A program made the position numbers and the translations under genes. This document shows positions 51,583 through 61,139 of a DNA stretch of 64,000 nt, one piece after another. Under the pieces are notes generated by a model that was not told the DNA's origin, ran no database searches, and saw nothing but the letters and a program-made list of their open reading frames with translations. The stretch comes from Guillardia theta CCMP2712. Its lineage: Eukaryota > Protista > Cryptophyta. The first letter of the stretch is position 1, and every line of letters begins with the position of its first letter. The stretch covers positions 587,882 through 651,881 of the forward strand of contig NW_005434663.1 of assembly GCF_000315625.1 (NCBI RefSeq). Reading direction: 5' to 3'.

Positions 51583-53345
51583 TGTCAGAATCCGTGTAAG
51601 ATGCTGCTCCTGGAATATGAATGGGAGATACAGATAGGAAGAGGATTGCAAGAGCAGAACACAGGGAGCCGGCCGCGTGTCCTTATGGAAGGATCAAGAG
51701 AGTTTGCGAGATCGAGTGAGAGCGGCTGAGGACGACGTACGACAGAAGAGGAGAGGAGCGGAGGTCAGCAAGTTTCCCCTGCGACTGAAATCGAGCTTTT
51801 TCCTCTTCCAAGTCTCCTTCAGAGAGGGGTGGGGTGATGCAAGGATACATCCCAACCAGTAGGTAGGGTGATGAGGTAAATTAATTGGAAAATAGGGGGT
51901 ACTCATTGGGTCAATGGGGGGTATATATTTTGGGGGGGGTATCTAGTAGGATATAGCAGCACAAAAATATGACACAAGGGTGGTTCACGTGTTGAATCTT
52001 CTTGGACGACCCCTGGACGTATCTACTTGAGGGGGGTGAGGCCCTGGTCGTGCACCGTCTGTCAAGGGTTCAAACAGGGGTCCAGGCAACAATCATGACG
52101 GGTGAAATAAGGGTGGGGTGGAGTAGTATCTCCGATAACTCACGAGATATCAAATGATGACATTTGAGCGCATTTCCTCCGGCAAATAATTTTTTTGAAG
52201 GAACCAAACTCCGGAAATCCAAACGAAAGGGAACTTCTTCGTATTGAAAGATGGTCACATGCCCATCAGCATCGTCAAATTTTCGCTGTCGTCACGATGT
52301 CGCACGTTCCTGGTTGGCTAATGAAACTTTACCACTGCTGATCGCCTCCGAACCGTCGTGCCTTTCCGTCAGGGATATTGTTGAGTAATGATTTTAGATA
52401 TCAGCGACTCCGATCCTCCGAAGGTTTGAAGTCAAGTTCGCCTCGGATTTCAACCTTCGGAAGATCCGGAGACAGAACCACATCTGAGAATCTCTACCTT
52501 AGAGCTGGAGTGCTGCCCTTGGACAACTAAACTGATTTTCAAATCCCAGCACTGGTACTGCCGTACCTGTCAGCCGCGAATCCCGTCAGCCGCAGGGTCC
52601 GATCACCCGCCGGGTCGTGACTACCGGGTGGAATCCGACTCAGTAGTAGTGAGGGCCACCGGGTCCCCGGGCCCGGGTCACCTCCCCGGGCAGACCGGTG
52701 ACCGGCTTTCACTGAAACGGGGGCCGTCAAGTTCAAAGCGGCCGGCGATGTCACATCACATTGAACTCATGATGCCGGGCGGCTCGACGGTCACGGCGTC
52801 GGTCCCGCTCGGAGGGCCGGTAGGACCAGTCATTCTCCCGGGCGCGGCCCCCGGCCACGACGCCGGGGCCGCGCGGCCAGGCGGCCGGTGGCCCCCGGCG
52901 GACATGCCACGCGGAGTGCCGCCGCTCACACTGATCGGGGTGACGGTGATCTTCAACCAAACAGTGCCAGGCGGCAGTGCCAGGGCCGCGCAGTCTGGCC
53001 CGGGCCGGGCCGGGCCCGGCCCCCGCCAGCCCGCCGGGCCGACTGTGGCAGCAAATGTCGTATAAGACAGGAATTACCCGCTGCAAGGGCAGCAGCATTC
53101 TGGAGGCCGACGGCATGCTAGGGGGAGAGGCGGCGGGTGAGGGTTGGGCAGAGGTGGAGAGCGAGAGAGTGTAGAAGGAGGACCAGGAAGATGATCATAA
53201 AGCGGAGTTTGAGGCAAGAGCTGTGTCGAAAACTATGCTGGATGTGCGCTCAACCAGATTCATCGTAAGAAGCATGCGCAGCAAAGTCTGTGAAGAACAT
53301 GCAGGGCATTCGTGAGCGTTAGAGCTCGTGGTACATCTCGACCCG

Positions 53346-55724
53346 ATGAAGCTAGATAGCTCATTTCTCTTTGTCCTCTCTGTCCTCACAATGAGAGCTG
53401 GCCTTAACACGGCGTTCTTCTCACTACCGCTGCCCTTGACGGGAGGTAGTTTTGGTAGGACTTTGAAGCCAATCGCAACAAGGCTGGCAGGGCAACCGCA
53501 CATGACTGTTATGGGGTACAACAGCAAGCCAAGTCGACAGAATGGAATCGCCATCTCCAGGACAAGGAACAAGAAGCGCCATCTCTCCCCGCGGACAAGC
53601 CCCCCCGCTCAACAGAGCGCGACGACGACGAAATCGTCGAAGCAGATCACAAGGAAGCTGAAGCATCTTATCAAAACCGACCCGGGAGAAGCAACGAGAT
53701 ACTTCCATGAGCTGCGCAGCTCAAACCTGGTTGACTCGTATCATTACGCCGTCATGATTGAGGAAGCAGAGGATCTGCCAGGAGCCATGGAGCTCCTGGA
53801 GGAACTGAGGGGGAGGGGCCTGCAAGAGCAGTGTGCGTGCCACAACTCGATATTGAAGAAGATCTGCATGATGGGACAGATGGAGGAGGCAGAGAAGTAC
53901 TTCCTGCGGATGAAGGGAGACGCGAGCATATCCCCCAACTACCGCACCTACTGCCACCTCATCCTGGCGCACAGCGGGAGCAACGAGAGCAGATGCGAGG
54001 AGCTGTTCGAGGAGATGAGGGTTGGGAACCTTTCCTTGGGGTACGGGAGGTGGCAGGAGCTGGTGAAGGATCTTAGGATCAAGATGGAGACGACCAACCT
54101 GCAGGATAAGCTAAGAAGCTCCTTGGAGGGGCCCGTCGGGGAGTTCGAACGGCTCCTCGGGGAGGGACTGGTGGACACCGTGACCTTCAACCTCGTCCTC
54201 AACAGCAGCAAGACGGCAGAGGAGGCAGAGGAGACCTGGAGGAGGCTTCAGCTGATCGACCTGAAGCCTGACGTCACGAGCTACAAGATCTTCCTCAAGA
54301 TCCTGTGCTCCCACCACAAGTTCCAGCAGGTCCAGCGCGCATGTCATTGTGCTGTCTTGCTGTTGCCCTGACTCCCCGTGTGCAGGCGGAGGAAGTGATG
54401 GAGGAGGCGATGCAGAAGCAGCTGGAGAACAACAAGATCTTCACGCGCCTCATCTCGAGCTACAGCGACGCGGGGAGAGGAGGAGACGCGGACAGAATCT
54501 TCCAGCTTGCAAGGGCTCGAGGATTTCTGAAGCAGCATGAAACGTGGGCAGATCGCTAGTCCCCTCCCTCTCCCTCCCTCCCTCCCTCCCTCCCTCCCTC
54601 CCTCCCTCCCTCTCCCTCCCTTCCTCTCCCTCCTTGTCTTTGTCTTCCTTGGACCTCCTCCGTGCTCAGGTAGCTCACAAGTGCTCCAGGTATGAGTCAG
54701 TGGTACGAGGTCTGCAACTGGCAACCTACAAGAAGCTACTGCGATCCCTCATCGAGGTGAAGGAGCGGAGGAAAGGAGGGCGCGACATGAAAATGAAAAT
54801 GGAGGAGCAAGTGGGAGGGACGCAGGCAGGGAGGGAGAGACGGGGGAAGCAGAGAATGGAAGGAGGGGCAAGGAGAGAATGGAAAGAGGGGAGGGAGGGA
54901 GGGTGCGAGGGAGGGAGGGAGAGGGGTGATTGAGAAAGTGATGGTGATGGTGATGGTGATGGTGATGGTGATGAAATGGAGGCGATGGTGATGATTCAGA
55001 CGACTGAAGGACACGTTGTTCATGTTACTGACTTCCTACATGTTTACAAAGATGGAAGATCATAACAGGGCTGTCGATGTTTTGATCCAAATGCTGAAGA
55101 CGGATGTGTTGGACACGTCGTCGATAGACTTGATCCTTTCAGGTCAGATGAGAACATTCCTATATCACCTCTTGTTGCTGCTTCTGCTGCTGCTACGCAT
55201 CACCGTTGTCAACCCATCAACCATGATCAAAGCTGCAATAAGTGCCATTGTTGTCAATCTTCTACATCTCTTGCCGTCCTCTCTGTACTCCTTTGTCACC
55301 ATCTTCATCTCTACCACTCTCAAACTCTTTGTCCCATCTTGTTAGCAGCATCGCCCGACATGAGTTTTGCAGTTCCCGGCACTCACATCGCCTACGACCT
55401 TCTGCTCAAGCTGCAAGCACAGGACATTCAACTTGAGGCGGCGACGACATCCCTACTCCTCAAGGTCTTCATGACAAGTCTACCTCCTCCTCCTCCTCCT
55501 CCTCTTTCTCCTCGTCCACCTCTCCCACCACCACCATCTCCTCCTCCTCCTCCTCCACCACCACCACCACCACCACCTCTCCAACCACCACCATCTCCTG
55601 TCCCCCTCCCCCCCCCCTCCTCCTCCTTCTCCTCCTCCTTTTGAATTTCTCGCAGACTCTTTCACGGAAGAAGTCTCCGCATGAGCTGTCGCAGCTTATT
55701 TCTGCGTTCAAGCATTCGCTGTGA
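53346..55724 (+). CDS. Plastid-targeted PPR protein
   Basis: Signal peptide MKLDSSFLFVLSVLTMRAGLNTA-FF followed by an S/T/R-rich transit peptide. PPR motifs: CHNSILKKICMMGQMEEAEKYFLRMK..ISPNYRTYCHLILAH, DTVTFNLVL, LKPDVTSYKIFLKILC, IFTRLISSYSDAG. The last exon ends ..KHSL*. Confidence 0.88.
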
Positions 55725-56053: not shown

Positions 56054-56297
56054 TCAGTATCGTCCGTAGGACGAGTAGCCCCCAAATCCTGGTCGCAGAG
56101 ATCGTTGGACTGCCTGCTTGAACGCGGGAAGGTTGTCCTGACAAACCATCATTCTCTTTCCTCCCCCGTTCCACCTCCTCCCTCCCCCGACAGCCATCGC
56201 ATGCCTACCTTCATCAGCTCTGCTGCTTCCTTGTTGAGCGGGTCTTGAGGGTTTGGCTCCTGAGTAGCAACGTGAGGAGATGATGGAAACAAGAAGC

Positions 56298-56338
<41 letters not shown>

Positions 56339-56596
56339 GGTTAGTGTCGGAGGACACCAGGAGAACAGGAAGTGGGGGAGGGGGAAACAGGGGGGGATGG
56401 GGTCCAAGACGGGGGGGGGGGGGGGGGGGAGGTTGGAGGAGAAGGAGACCAGGAACAAGAAGAAGAGTCCGTTGATGACGGCGCCGATGTCAAGCACTGG
56501 CTTCCACTCGTCACGAAGGATGTTCAAGCAGACCTTGCCCTCCAAGTCGATATTGGGATGAAACACCTGGAAGCTCTAGGTCAGCACGAGAGGGAG

Positions 56597-56632
<36 letters not shown>

Positions 56633-57376
56633 AGAAGCAAGGAGGATACATCAAATATAAGGAGGCGACACAGCACAGCAACGAAAATAGAGAAAGAGCA
56701 TAGCAATGAAAGGGGAGGGAGAGAAAGAGCAAGGGGAGGAGGAGGAGGAGGTATAGGAGGGGGAGGAGGGGGGAGGAGAAGAATGGGGGGAGAACACATC
56801 ACCTTGGTGGTGCAGAGAGTCTTGGGTGGGGAATGGGGATAGTCGGACGGGATCTCAAACTTGAAGCTGAACTTGCCTCCCTTCCAGAAGCCCTGGGGAT
56901 ACAAAAGCATGAGAGGAGGAGCAGCAATAGGAAGGAGGGAAACGAGAGTAGGAGGAAGCGAGCAAGGAGGGAGAAGGGAAACGAGAGCAAGAGGGAGGAG
57001 GGAGGGGAGAGCAAGAGAGAGGAGGGAGGGGAGAGCAGTGCAAGAGGGGTCGACTGATCGACATTCACCTCGTCGGGCATGAGCGTGACATTGAAGTTCA
57101 TGATGTCGTCGGGGTCCGGGAACTCCATCTGGCACCAGGAGTTCTTCTCGATCCCATTCTTGAGATCTGAGCGCGTCAAACTCCGTCAAACGCACAAGGG
57201 GGAGGGAGGGGGCAGGAGGAGGAAGAGGAGGAGGCACGTCGCTGCTAACCTTTCTGGACTCGTCGTTGGGCAGCGGGGATGATCTTTCCTCCAGCCTTGC
57301 TCCCTCCCTCTGCGGACTCACTCGATCCTGCCTTCTGCTCTGCCTTCTCCTGCTTCAGCTTCAACAGGTTCAGCAT
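56054..57376 (-). CDS. UBC12: NEDD8-conjugating E2 enzyme Ubc12
   Basis: N-terminal docking peptide [11 protein letters not shown]. Then [90 protein letters not shown]; 6 exons. Confidence 0.93.
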
Positions 57377-58485
57377 CCTTCCGTCGCTCCTCTCCTGCAA
57401 GGAACCAACGTCAGGGCTGGACGCGTCTCCCGCTCGCTCCGACTCTCGTCTCCTCGTAAGCACTGACGATCGCAACAGGCGCTGCAACTGACTGGTTGCG
57501 GGTGTTGTTCACAATCATCCATCATCCCCAGTATGATATCGCCTCCTTCCTGTTGATGACTTTGCTTTGCATGGAGACAACCACCAAACTCTTCTCTGCT
57601 TCCTACCACCCATCGACATGCTGGAACTTTTCTGCTCTCCTTTCTCCCCCCCCACCCCCATCGCCCCGCTCTTCTCTACTCGTCCTCGTCACACTTCTCC
57701 TCCGTTCCTGTCTCCAGGCTGAAGTTTTGCCCTACCAAACACAACTCTGCTCATCACACACCTAGTACTCATCGTCCTCGTTATAACCCCGATGCTTCCG
57801 TATGACCTGCCCACTCTGCTGCTTCCAACGCTTCCCCTTCTCTGCTGCTCTCCTGCTCCTCTCTCTGTTCATCTCCATGCTCTCCTCTCTGCTCTCCTCC
57901 CTGCTCCGCGTTCTAGTTCTAGCTCTGCTCGTCTTCCTCCCCTCCTCCTTCCCCTTCCTCCTCAGCCATGGTTCGCCTCTTGCTCTGCTGTTTTAGAGGG
58001 GTGACGAGTAAAAGTCCTAAAATACCGCCGAGGTCTGAATGCAGCCTGATTTTCATGCATCAACCAATATTTTTTAATATATAAAGGAAACTATTGAAAT
58101 TTACCAATATTATTTCTAAAGCTCAAACGAAACCAAACAAATTTGGCATTCCGAGGGATTGGACAAGGAGTGCTGGGGGTGGGGGCGGGAGAATGGGCGG
58201 GAGGAGGGGATAGCCATGCTCGGCCTTGTACGGTGGTAACGTAGGACATAAATCCTCTGAACAGCATGAAGTTCCATGCGCTCTCATGAGGGAACGACCC
58301 CACATTGCTCTGATCGATCAAGCTCGTCGCCCCGCTGCATCCTCCCTCACTCCCCACAGCCTCGGCTCCTCTTCCGTCCTCTCCCCACAGACGACATCGA
58401 GCAGCGATGGGAGGAAAAGACATCTTCACTTTCTTTAAACAAAATTCAAGCAATTGTGGGCGTCAACCACGGATCAATATCAAAT

Positions 58486-60428
58486 CTATTTCTTGGCGGC
58501 AGGAGCAGCTTCCGTCTGCCAGGGCGTCAGAGGGAGCAGGAGCGATGGGGGCAGGCTTCACCTTAGCAGCTCCCTTGGCAGCAGGGGCAGGGGCAGCGGC
58601 CTTGGGTGCCTCAACCTGGGCGAGTTAGGGGGGAAGAGGAGGCAGAGGGGCAGCCACCTTAGGGGCCTCCTGCTTCTTAGGGGCCTCCTGTCGTGTTGTC
58701 AGACAGGGAGGGAGGAGGAGGAGGAGGGCACTTGCCTTGGGAGCAGGGGTGAGGCTAGCAAGCTTCTTCTCCTCGGAGGTGACGACGGAAGCCTTCTTGT
58801 CGAACTCACCCTTGAGCTTCGACTGCTCCGACTTGAGCTTCGACTCCTCCTGCTTGATCTTCTTGACCTGCGGGGGGATGTGAGGAAAGGACATCTTGCT
58901 GCCTTGACCTCCAACCTCGTTCTCGATGTTGCCGATGTCATTCAGAAGACGCTCCTGCACCGCATAGAGTCAGGAGACTCTCCTCCTCCGCCCCGCTCTC
59001 CTCCTCTGCGTCTACCTCCTTCTTGAGGTCCTTGGCGCTCTGAGCAGCATCCAGTGCTTTCTCAAGGTCATCGAACTAGAAAAGCGTCAGAGAGGAGTAG
59101 GAGGAAGCAACGAGACGAAGGCGAGAGAGAGAGAGAGAGAACAAGTCATGGCAGGGAGTGAGAGAACAAGTCATGGCAGGGAGTGAGAGAACAAGTCATG
59201 GCAGGGAAGGGGGGTAAGGGAAGGTGTGGATGAAGTTGTGGAGGAAAATAGAGCAACAGACCTTGCTGGTGCTGGAGATCAACCTCTCGGAGAGCTTCTT
59301 GAGCTCGCCAGTCTTCTTGTCAAGAGCCTTCGACGGCTGTAAGGCGCGAGGGGATGCGGAGACACCTGCTCACCTGTTTGGCGCTATTGGCCTCCTTCTT
59401 GGCCTTCTCTACCTTGCCCTTCTGCTCCTTGATCTGCTTGGCCTGCGCAACACCAACTTGGTCAGTTGCAGTCTGCACGAGGGCCAGTCTCGGCTGACCC
59501 GCTTCTCGTCCTCCTGCTTCTTCTTCTCCGCAGCCTTCTTCGCCTCCTCCTTCTGTAGCAGAGAGTCAGCCACGTTGCTGACGTCATCCTGCCCTGTCCA
59601 ACCTTCTTCGCCTCCTCTTTCTTCTTCCTCTCAGCTTCAGCCTGTCACACCGGAAGTCATCAGGCATCTGACAGCTCTAAGAGACGCCATCCTCCACCTT
59701 AGCCTTCTTGATCTCATCCTCGGCTTTCTTCTTGGCCTCCTTTGCCTGCAGCCGTATGACCACAGCGGAGCTCTGCGACAAACAAGATCTCCCACCTTCT
59801 TCTCCTCCTCTCGGAGCTTCCTCTCAGCCTCCTCGCGCGCCTTCTTTTCCTGCGGGCCCACCTTCAGCTTTCAACCCCTCCGCTCAAGAACAGGACCTTC
59901 TCGGCACGGTCCTTCAACTCCTTCTCCAGAGCAGCCCTGCCACATCGGTCAGGCAAGAGCGAGCGCAGCGTCTGGCGGGTCATCACTTGGCAGCCTTGGC
60001 CTTGGCCGCAGCAGCCTGAGCGCGCTTCTCAGCCTCAGCTGCTCTCTGCTCGAAAGTGAGCTCCTTGGCGGGAGCCTGGGCTGCGACGGGGAGCACGGTC
60101 CCAGTGAGGATCGAGGAAGCGACCAAACTGAGGGAGAGGGGTCAGAGCTATCGCTGAGTTCGAGGGAGCATCACAATCCAGAGATGGTGGCGGTTGCCTT
60201 GCGCTTCAAGTTGTCCAGCTGGGAAGAATCCTGAGCAGAGCAGACCACTCTGCGTGACAGGCTGTTGCGGAGCGAGAGAGATCTGGACTCCCTGCGTCGT
60301 CGGTGTGAGACCTCTGGATGGCGACCGCCTCCCACACTCGCTCACCTCAGCACAGGAGCAGGGGAAAAGGCAGTGACGGGGTGGAGGATCGCGAGCGCCG
60401 CAAGGAATGCCAACGACGCCAGCGCCAT
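58486..60428 (-). CDS. K/E/A-rich coiled-coil protein with tripartite (ER signal + plastid transit + thylakoid lumen) presequence
   Basis: MALASLAFLAALAILHPVTA-FSPAPVLR|ESRSLSLRNSLSRR|DSSQLDNLKRKATATISGFLVASSILTGTVLPVAAQA-PAKELTFEQRAAEAEKRAQAAAAKAKAAK... About 16 short exons, mostly phase 0, ending ..EAAPAAKK*. Confidence 0.82.
59135..59207. repeat. 25-bp tandem repeat, about 3 copies (GAGAGAACAAGTCATGGCAGGGAGT), intronic
   Basis: Visible directly; no spacers. Confidence 0.9.
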
Positions 60429-61139
60429 GAAAGTAGAAGCCTTCATTCTGCATCCTAGTCAGCGCATCTCACAAGGCGTTCAAAGTTAGCTCATCCATGA
60501 GATGTCAAGGACAAAAAGAGTCTCGTCACACAGACATGAAAATCACGGCTGTACGAGAGCTATGCTGCTTGTGCGGGTCGCAACGCAAATATCCTATCAG
60601 CTTTCAAGTCCGACCGAGCTACGAATGCGCATCTTCAAAGACGAGGAGTCTACGTGTTCAAACAGAGAGGGTGGGTTTAAAGGTCGAGGCAGGATAATTA
60701 GGAGGGATAATTTCTGCATGAACACTTCCTATCGATGCCCTCCCAATAGGAATGCTATGTTTTCCTTGCGCATCGTCCTCCACTGTCCTGGTCAGCATCC
60801 GATTGCACGTGCTGAGTCGGACAGAAACTCAATCCTATCTAACTGGCCGAAAGTTGTTCAACAACATGAAACGTTTGCTCTGAGGTTCCTCGCCTGGACA
60901 ACCTACTGCTTTCCTGGTGTTGGGAATCACCTTTACCTACCGTGGCCTGCGCAGGTAATCGTGTCTGCACCATCTCTACTTCTTCAAACTCTCCATGTAC
61001 ATGTTGGACTTCCTGATATCCACTCGAAACCATGTCTCAACCTCGTCCTGATCTTCCTCTGCTATCTTCTCTTCCTCCTTCTCCTCGTTGACTCCCGCCC
61101 TCCCACCCTCCTTCATGGATCCGCAATGCATCGGCCACC

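Follow-up and report, generated by a model that had tools for sequence, protein, structure and literature searches.

The 64,000-nt stretch of the Guillardia theta CCMP2712 genome analysed here (contig NW_005434663.1, positions 587,882 to 651,881 of the forward strand; hereafter the window) carries on its minus strand, at 58486-60446, a gene of 16 exons for a 357-aa protein with a three-part leader and a highly charged passenger, which we call the rod protein. A sequence-only reading of this locus had proposed a Lys/Glu/Ala-rich coiled-coil rod targeted to the thylakoid lumen, a candidate lumenal spacer or antenna scaffold. The gene is real, transcribed and spliced. Its leader resembles those of known lumen proteins of the same genome, and its passenger is better described, from its residue patterns, as a probable single helix followed by a short coiled coil and an extended arm.

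Gene structure and transcripts

Exon borders were set by coordinates and the joined exons translated; public sequencing runs were then aligned to the interval 58300-60600. Exons 1-8 lie at 60446-60346, 60291-60175, 60127-59987, 59936-59897, 59849-59796, 59745-59698, 59641-59603 and 59552-59499, and exons 9-16 at 59442-59374, 59327-59262, 59075-59016, 58954-58916, 58867-58736, 58687-58658, 58615-58562 and 58515-58486, the last ending in a TAG stop codon. A 1162-nt contig of run X1 covers 58413-60449 with all 15 joints, and partial contigs in runs X2 and X4 reproduce whichever joints they cover; the three runs come from three studies. A contig without the 15 introns can only be derived from RNA, and the gene is therefore transcribed and spliced as modelled. 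Fourteen of the 15 joints matched the coordinate-built model exactly. The sole deviation was the acceptor of intron 9, which is moved by 9 nt in the transcripts: the intron is 46 nt instead of 37 nt and exon 10 starts at 59327, not 59336. The corrected coding sequence comprises 1074 nt and encodes 357 aa (360 aa in the initial model).

The sequence-only reading had placed the start at 60428, which is Met7 of the translation; the first ATG of the gene lies at 60446. Its stop at 58486, reached through the last 46-nt intron, agrees with the transcripts. Exons 1-3, which carry the hydrophobic stretch and its AQA end, are joined in frame in the contigs of X1 and X4, and among these contigs no cDNA lacking that frame was seen. 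The 3' untranslated region (UTR) within the contigs spans 58413-58485 (contig ends at 58412-58418). At the other side only the end of the 5' UTR adjoining the ATG is covered (60447-60449), with a loose end at 60449 in X1. The X1 contig extends upstream of this point by 12 letters unlike the adjoining DNA, and a CAG acceptor is present at 60450-60448; the 5' UTR is therefore likely to be interrupted by an intron whose acceptor lies at about 60448.

The introns measure 42-61 nt, except intron 10, and all are GT-AG bar one GC-AG. The latter, intron 13 (58688-58735, minus strand; donor AAG/GCAAGT), was recovered as a 48-nt joint in three runs, and a GT-AG placement is impossible within the 3-nt ambiguity of the joint. 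Intron 10 (59076-59261) reaches 186 nt because of a minisatellite, a 25-nt unit present in 3.1 copies at 98% identity (59131-59207), and the (GA)9 run that adjoins it. A 21-nt repeat (2.5 copies) is carried by exon 13. A tandem-duplication origin of the short Lys/Glu exons was considered and rejected, as no repeat is found at the DNA level other than these two. Introns 12, 13 and 14 (48, 48 and 42 nt; 58625-58960, minus strand) are multiples of three and stop-free, so that exons 12-14 read through as one 111-aa open reading frame (ORF) and intron retention would keep the frame; all three are spliced in every contig seen.

Codon usage is biased, with a frequency of optimal codons of 0.625, compared with 0.69 for phycoerythrin-alpha and PsbO and 0.47 for the long ORFs of the window, a crude background set. 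The bias, which had been taken to suggest high expression, is indeed near that of highly expressed genes, but the depth of RNA is only moderate. Word depth in the RNA contigs was 6-29, and one read aligned from the sampled 6% of raw RNA run X15; the short exons hamper placement of 60-nt reads. We read the expression level as moderate.

Three-part leader and predicted lumen address

Every leader element named in the sequence-only reading is present in the transcript-corrected translation. The protein begins with an endoplasmic-reticulum-type signal peptide (aa 1-25; 60372-60446, minus strand, as are all parts of the protein), which has a hydropathy of 2.17 over 19 residues and ends in VTA with Phe at +1. 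It is followed by a Ser/Arg-rich, transit-peptide-like stretch of 37 aa with six Arg against three acidic residues (aa 26-62; 60207-60371, including intron 1 at 60292-60345). The third part is a putative thylakoid-transfer signal (aa 63-91; 60073-60206, including intron 2 at 60128-60174), in which KRK precedes a 26-residue uncharged stretch with a 16-residue hydrophobic core and the end P-V-A-A-Q-A; the next residues are P-A-K-E.

We compared this leader with those of genuine lumen proteins of the same genome, phycoerythrin alpha-1, PsbO and PsbU, read from their loci. In the assembly (87.1 Mb, 669 contigs) the cryptophyte-type phycoerythrin alpha family has at least 23 matches, each above the curated cut-off, and in 14 control genomes it has none, which marks the assembly as the nuclear genome of a cryptophyte. 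Phe stands at +1 of the first junction in all four proteins (AAA/F-S-P in phycoerythrin alpha-1, AAA/F-Q-P in PsbO, ASA/F-S-S in PsbU and VTA/F-S-P in the rod protein), and in each a hydroxylated and basic transit part leads to a lumen signal with a basic n-region and a hydrophobic core, closing in a Pro and then AXA. These ends read V-P-A-Q-A in phycoerythrin alpha-1, A-A-N-A in PsbO and A-L-A-N-A in PsbU. The lumen signals of phycoerythrin alpha-1 and PsbU are Tat-like, with a twin arginine and a hydropathy over 19 residues of 1.02-1.65 and 1.33, respectively. In contrast, the rod protein has no twin arginine beside its hydrophobic core and therefore, by sequence, carries a Sec-type signal; its KRK resembles the Lys-type, Sec-like signal of PsbO, and its hydropathy (1.75) is close to that of PsbO (1.72). 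The rod protein differs from the other three in its longer transit part, in the Pro that follows AXA and in a passenger that appears to be purely rod-like, without a folded domain. The genome has two PsbU-like genes (C32:489743-492859 and C9:962272-965415); in each, the lumen signal carries a twin arginine and its A-N-A end precedes E-I-D-Y.

Type I membrane proteins, too, combine a signal peptide with a single hydrophobic segment further on; in such a protein the second stretch would act as a stop-transfer sequence in the endoplasmic reticulum or the outermost plastid membrane and leave the rod in the cytosol. We consider this very improbable: with its Phe at +1 and its Ser/Arg-rich stretch the leader is like those of plastid-imported proteins from this genome, the basic residues precede the hydrophobic stretch instead of trailing it, and the hydropathy of that stretch is lumen-signal-like, well below that of the protein's own signal peptide for the endoplasmic reticulum. 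The lumen signal is flanked by positive charge on its N-terminal side (KRK) and by a net charge of -2 on its C-terminal side; by the positive-inside rule the N side should thus stay in the stroma and the C-terminal part cross into the lumen. The translation contains no second hydrophobic segment after the lumen signal, so that a loop insertion like that of CFoII or PsbW is not an option. Taken together, the junction motif, the P..AXA end, the PsbO-like hydropathy and the flank charges support the proposed targeting well, and the C-terminal part probably faces the lumen, whether soluble or anchored.

Whether it is released depends on the cleavage site, which has Ala at both -3 and -1 and Pro at +1. 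In bacteria, Pro at +1 blocks cleavage by type I signal peptidase. The thylakoidal processing peptidase is an enzyme of this type and is stricter at -3/-1 (PMC3210150). The signal may be cleaved two residues earlier, after V-A-A, a site that avoids the Pro, or may stay uncut and leave a membrane-anchored protein with its rod in the lumen. An uncut signal would make the rod protein a signal-anchored thylakoid membrane protein with a stromal N-terminus, whose rod extends into or across the lumen in the manner of TolA or TonB, and at 26 residues the uncharged stretch has the length needed to cross a bilayer. In TolA, with its domain II, and in TonB, with its rod, a hydrophobic segment at the N-terminus is joined to a long Ala/Lys/Glu helix and to an extended Pro/Lys/Glu-rich segment that could span the gap between two membranes. 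The layout of the rod protein, with its Lys/Ala/Glu-rich helix and Pro-rich arm, resembles this, and the thylakoid lumen is topologically periplasm-like. However, with only 16 residues the hydrophobic core is short, and it leads into a textbook P-x-x-A-x-A of the kind seen where the signals are cleaved from PsbO, PsbU and phycoerythrin alpha, the V-A-A site offers a cut that avoids the Pro, and the signal as a whole looks cleavable. Unlike TolA and TonB, the rod protein has no C-terminal globular domain and ends in a low-complexity tail, and no sign of partners of the TolQR or ExbBD type was noted; equally, in exon-wise searches no exon matched the TolA or TonB families, including TolA domain III and the TonB C-terminal domain, in Pfam or NCBIfam. 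We regard the uncut anchor as possible but unlikely.

Sections of the passenger and their likeness to known proteins

The putative mature part consists of 266 aa (29.4 kDa, pI 9.7) with 79 basic and 56 acidic residues, a net charge of +23. It is built from only 15 residue types and lacks Cys, His, Met, Trp and Tyr, and therefore offers neither a cysteine for bilin attachment nor a metal or redox motif. Sliding-window analysis of charge, i/i+4 pairs and heptad a/d hydrophobicity delimited three sections. The first is an Ala/Lys/Glu-rich, predicted helical rod (aa 92-221; 59374-60072) that starts Ala-rich and takes on ER/K-type character at about 119-200. It is followed by an amphipathic, heptad-patterned and probably helical region, a candidate dimerisation or bundle part (aa 222-315; 58751-59327), and by an Ala/Pro/Lys-rich tail (aa 316-357; 58486-58750, including the stop codon), which holds about four x-E-A-P-K units and, in its 42 aa, 16 Ala, 8 Pro and 9 Lys or Arg.

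Residues 119-200, encoded by exons of 13-23 aa, are 65-79% charged, with dense opposite charges at i/i+4. Windows starting at 126-175 reach 71-79% charged residues and pair scores of 15-19, compared with 2-6 elsewhere. No hydrophobic heptad seam runs through 119-195, where the best register has 0-25% Leu, Ile, Val, Met or Phe and 38-62% charged residues at a/d. By contrast, a/d positions are 62-75% hydrophobic in windows starting at 217-231 and 259-294, and a heptad pattern was found only at about 217-245 and 259-300. Some 80-100 residues around 119-200 thus look like a single alpha-helix (SAH) of the ER/K type and not like a coiled coil, the two heptad blocks within about 217-300 fit a pairing or bundle region, and the tail is expected to be extended. 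The earlier description as a coiled-coil rod therefore stands for about 217-300 only and fails at 119-200. A helix-type Lys/Glu/Ala-rich sequence of the kind it had described as EAKKK-like is present, although over about 225 aa instead of some 250, and the APK/APA tail was found as described. At 0.15 nm per residue, a continuous helix over 119-200 would measure about 12 nm, and one over 98-221 about 19 nm.

SAH domains, rich in Glu, Lys and Arg, serve as stiff spacers and are frequently misassigned as coiled coils (PMC5347031, PMC4571873, PMC4183817). With those of myosin VI and X, INCENP and the KER region of CAF-1, the rod shares 71-79% Glu, Lys and Arg over about 70 residues, opposite charges at i/i+4 and the lack of a seam. 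In contrast to these domains, which are cytosolic or nuclear, the rod is predicted to be lumenal, contains 14-25% Ala and has far more Lys than Arg. Literature searches returned no report of an SAH or rod protein in the thylakoid lumen.

The same composition raises the prospect of a rod on the stromal side, anchored in the thylakoid or inner envelope, with its Lys-rich helix and histone-H1-like tail binding nucleic acid as a nucleoid or ribosome tether. The plant protein MFP1, a coiled-coil DNA-binding protein anchored to thylakoids, has such a build, with an N-terminal hydrophobic segment after the plastid leader and then a long charged helical part. The tail of the rod protein is similar in composition to basic DNA-binding tails, its mature part is strongly cationic, and a single helix rich in Lys, Glu and Arg can bind DNA, as does the KER helix of CAF-1 (PMC10335832). 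A stromal rod, however, would require the 37-residue N-terminal stretch, KRK included, to be moved across the membrane, and the flank charges point the opposite way. Both the AXA end and the Pro at -6 belong to the pattern of cleaved lumen signals, and it is by its AXA end and its flank charges that the rod protein departs from MFP1-type proteins towards the lumen side. This arrangement is distinctly unlikely.

With phycobilisome linkers and with the Rubisco-linking scaffold EPYC1 the rod protein has its basic character in common, and by analogy it could organise abundant acidic or multivalent partners. Unlike them, it has no Cys for bilin attachment and its RNA level is moderate. No Pfam match to the PBS-linker (PF00427) or CpcD (PF01383) families was found at E up to 10 in the exons searched.

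Searches for relatives used exons or read-through references singly, and with compositionally biased queries of 44-111 aa their blanks are weak ones. Six exon or read-through references, scanned against Pfam and NCBIfam, gave no enzyme or other domain, in keeping with the proposal that the rod protein has no enzyme domain. Sub-threshold matches to HMMR_C (E 0.047), Erythro-docking and an aspartate-semialdehyde dehydrogenase model were judged to be chance. An exhaustive search with the 111-aa read-through ORF of exons 12-14, against a representative library without the gene's own product, gave two repeat-protein matches, both rejected as artefacts that align to intron-derived residues. A word-index search restricted to exon 13 gave no candidate within its length window of 61-194 aa, which excludes full-length kin, and of 599 pattern matches in a metagenome contig scan none was confirmed. 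The best score of an ESM Atlas search by features, 0.81, lies below the useful level. Exons 3 and 13 are single-copy in their own genome and found nothing at E up to 10 in the Protein Data Bank by sequence, hence no match to the deposited cryptophyte photosystem chains.

Such a result would also be seen with a fast-evolving, low-complexity orphan that has a genuine leader but lacks a specific structural role; such a protein might be a lumenal polyampholyte that does no more than buffer charge or crowding. The restriction to 15 residue types, the short internal repeats, the failure of the exon-wise searches to find relatives and the moderate RNA depth are all compatible with it. Nevertheless, we hold it to be improbable, since the exact splicing of 16 exons and a codon usage approaching that of highly expressed genes point to a product under selection, and the three sections have distinct, ordered patterns instead of uniform low complexity.

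A possible structural role in the lumen

Among algae, only the cryptophytes keep a phycobiliprotein antenna packed inside the thylakoid lumen. In Hemiselmis the lumen is 12.7 ± 2.9 nm wide, and widths of 10-50 nm have been reported, wider in low light; it contains a dense, nearly immobile phycobiliprotein phase whose organising protein is not known (PMC10643455). It is an open question how this phase is arranged and coupled to the photosystems, and how it is matched to a lumen width that changes with light (PMC10643455). Psb-gamma of the cryptophyte photosystem II structures is a different, membrane-embedded linker (PMC11169493), and our literature searches found no report of a cryptophyte lumen scaffold. 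In its main text, proteomic work on the Guillardia antenna treats only the alpha and beta subunits (PMC5784005). A gene made of 30-140-nt exons, whose product has few trypsin-suited peptides, could escape both annotation and proteomics; the rod protein yields nine tryptic peptides of 7 aa or longer, residues 250-258 and 266-278 among them.

We propose that the rod protein is encoded in the nucleus and directed to the plastid by its three-part leader. The signal peptide would lead into the outer compartment derived from the endoplasmic reticulum, and the transit peptide, which begins with Phe and is rich in Ser and Arg, would then carry the protein through the inner plastid membranes. The C-terminal 266 residues would then come to lie in the thylakoid lumen, either free, after a cut at or just before AQA, or tethered by the uncleaved signal. 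There they would form a stiff ER/K single helix of about 12-19 nm, a heptad region able to pair two chains and an extended Ala-Pro-Lys arm. Such a polycationic rod or tether could bind acidic partners (phycobiliproteins with their bilin carboxylates, the lumenal faces of the photosystems, or anionic lipids) and hold them at a distance comparable to the width of the lumen. The passenger is made only of rod elements and has no catalytic or pigment-binding features, and a structural job is therefore the most likely one.

Several points weigh against this proposal. The Pro directly after AQA makes a cut at that site doubtful, and the proposed mature N-terminus is therefore uncertain. Helicity and the monomeric or dimeric state are predicted from composition only. 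No relatives were found in the weak exon-wise searches, and conservation therefore cannot support the function. The moderate RNA depth makes a bulk, stoichiometric antenna scaffold unlikely, although a sub-stoichiometric tether would still be compatible with it. Finally, the phycoerythrin alpha subunits, the only subunits for which charge was computed, are themselves slightly basic (net 0 to +3). We therefore regard the lumenal structural rod or tether, taken as a whole, as evenly poised between right and wrong.

A specific link to phycobiliproteins or to lumen width is more tentative and rather doubtful. The range of possible rod lengths matches the width of the lumen, but as it stands this is a numerical coincidence. 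In its most specific form the proposal has the rod protein, held at one end by an anchor or by dimerisation, act with its stiff ER/K helix and Ala-Pro-Lys arm as a molecular ruler or tether that would set or limit the 10-50 nm width of the lumen, pin the dense phycobiliprotein phase to the membrane by multivalent electrostatic contacts, or both; we consider this form unlikely. If this is true, the lumenal antenna would gain its first organising protein, and SAH-type spacers their first example inside a thylakoid. Even if the link to the antenna fails, an SAH spacer in the thylakoid lumen would be a new setting for that element. The gene nevertheless provides a transcript-confirmed candidate with a predicted lumen address and only rod and tether elements, which makes the question of antenna organisation testable.

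On the plus strand, opposite the Lys/Glu/Ala-rich exons of the rod protein gene, lies a 336-aa ORF rich in Leu, Ser and Phe (59224-60234). We rejected it as a gene, as it is a mirror effect of the AAG, GAG and GCC codons, although it could mislead ORF-based annotation. The neighbouring genes of the window are an intron-split gene for a ubiquitin-conjugating enzyme on the minus strand (56054-57321; UQ_con, E 3.6e-10 and 1.8e-6) and a gene for a PPR-repeat protein on the plus strand (53328-54371; PPR_2, E 3.1e-9), and both are unrelated to the rod protein.

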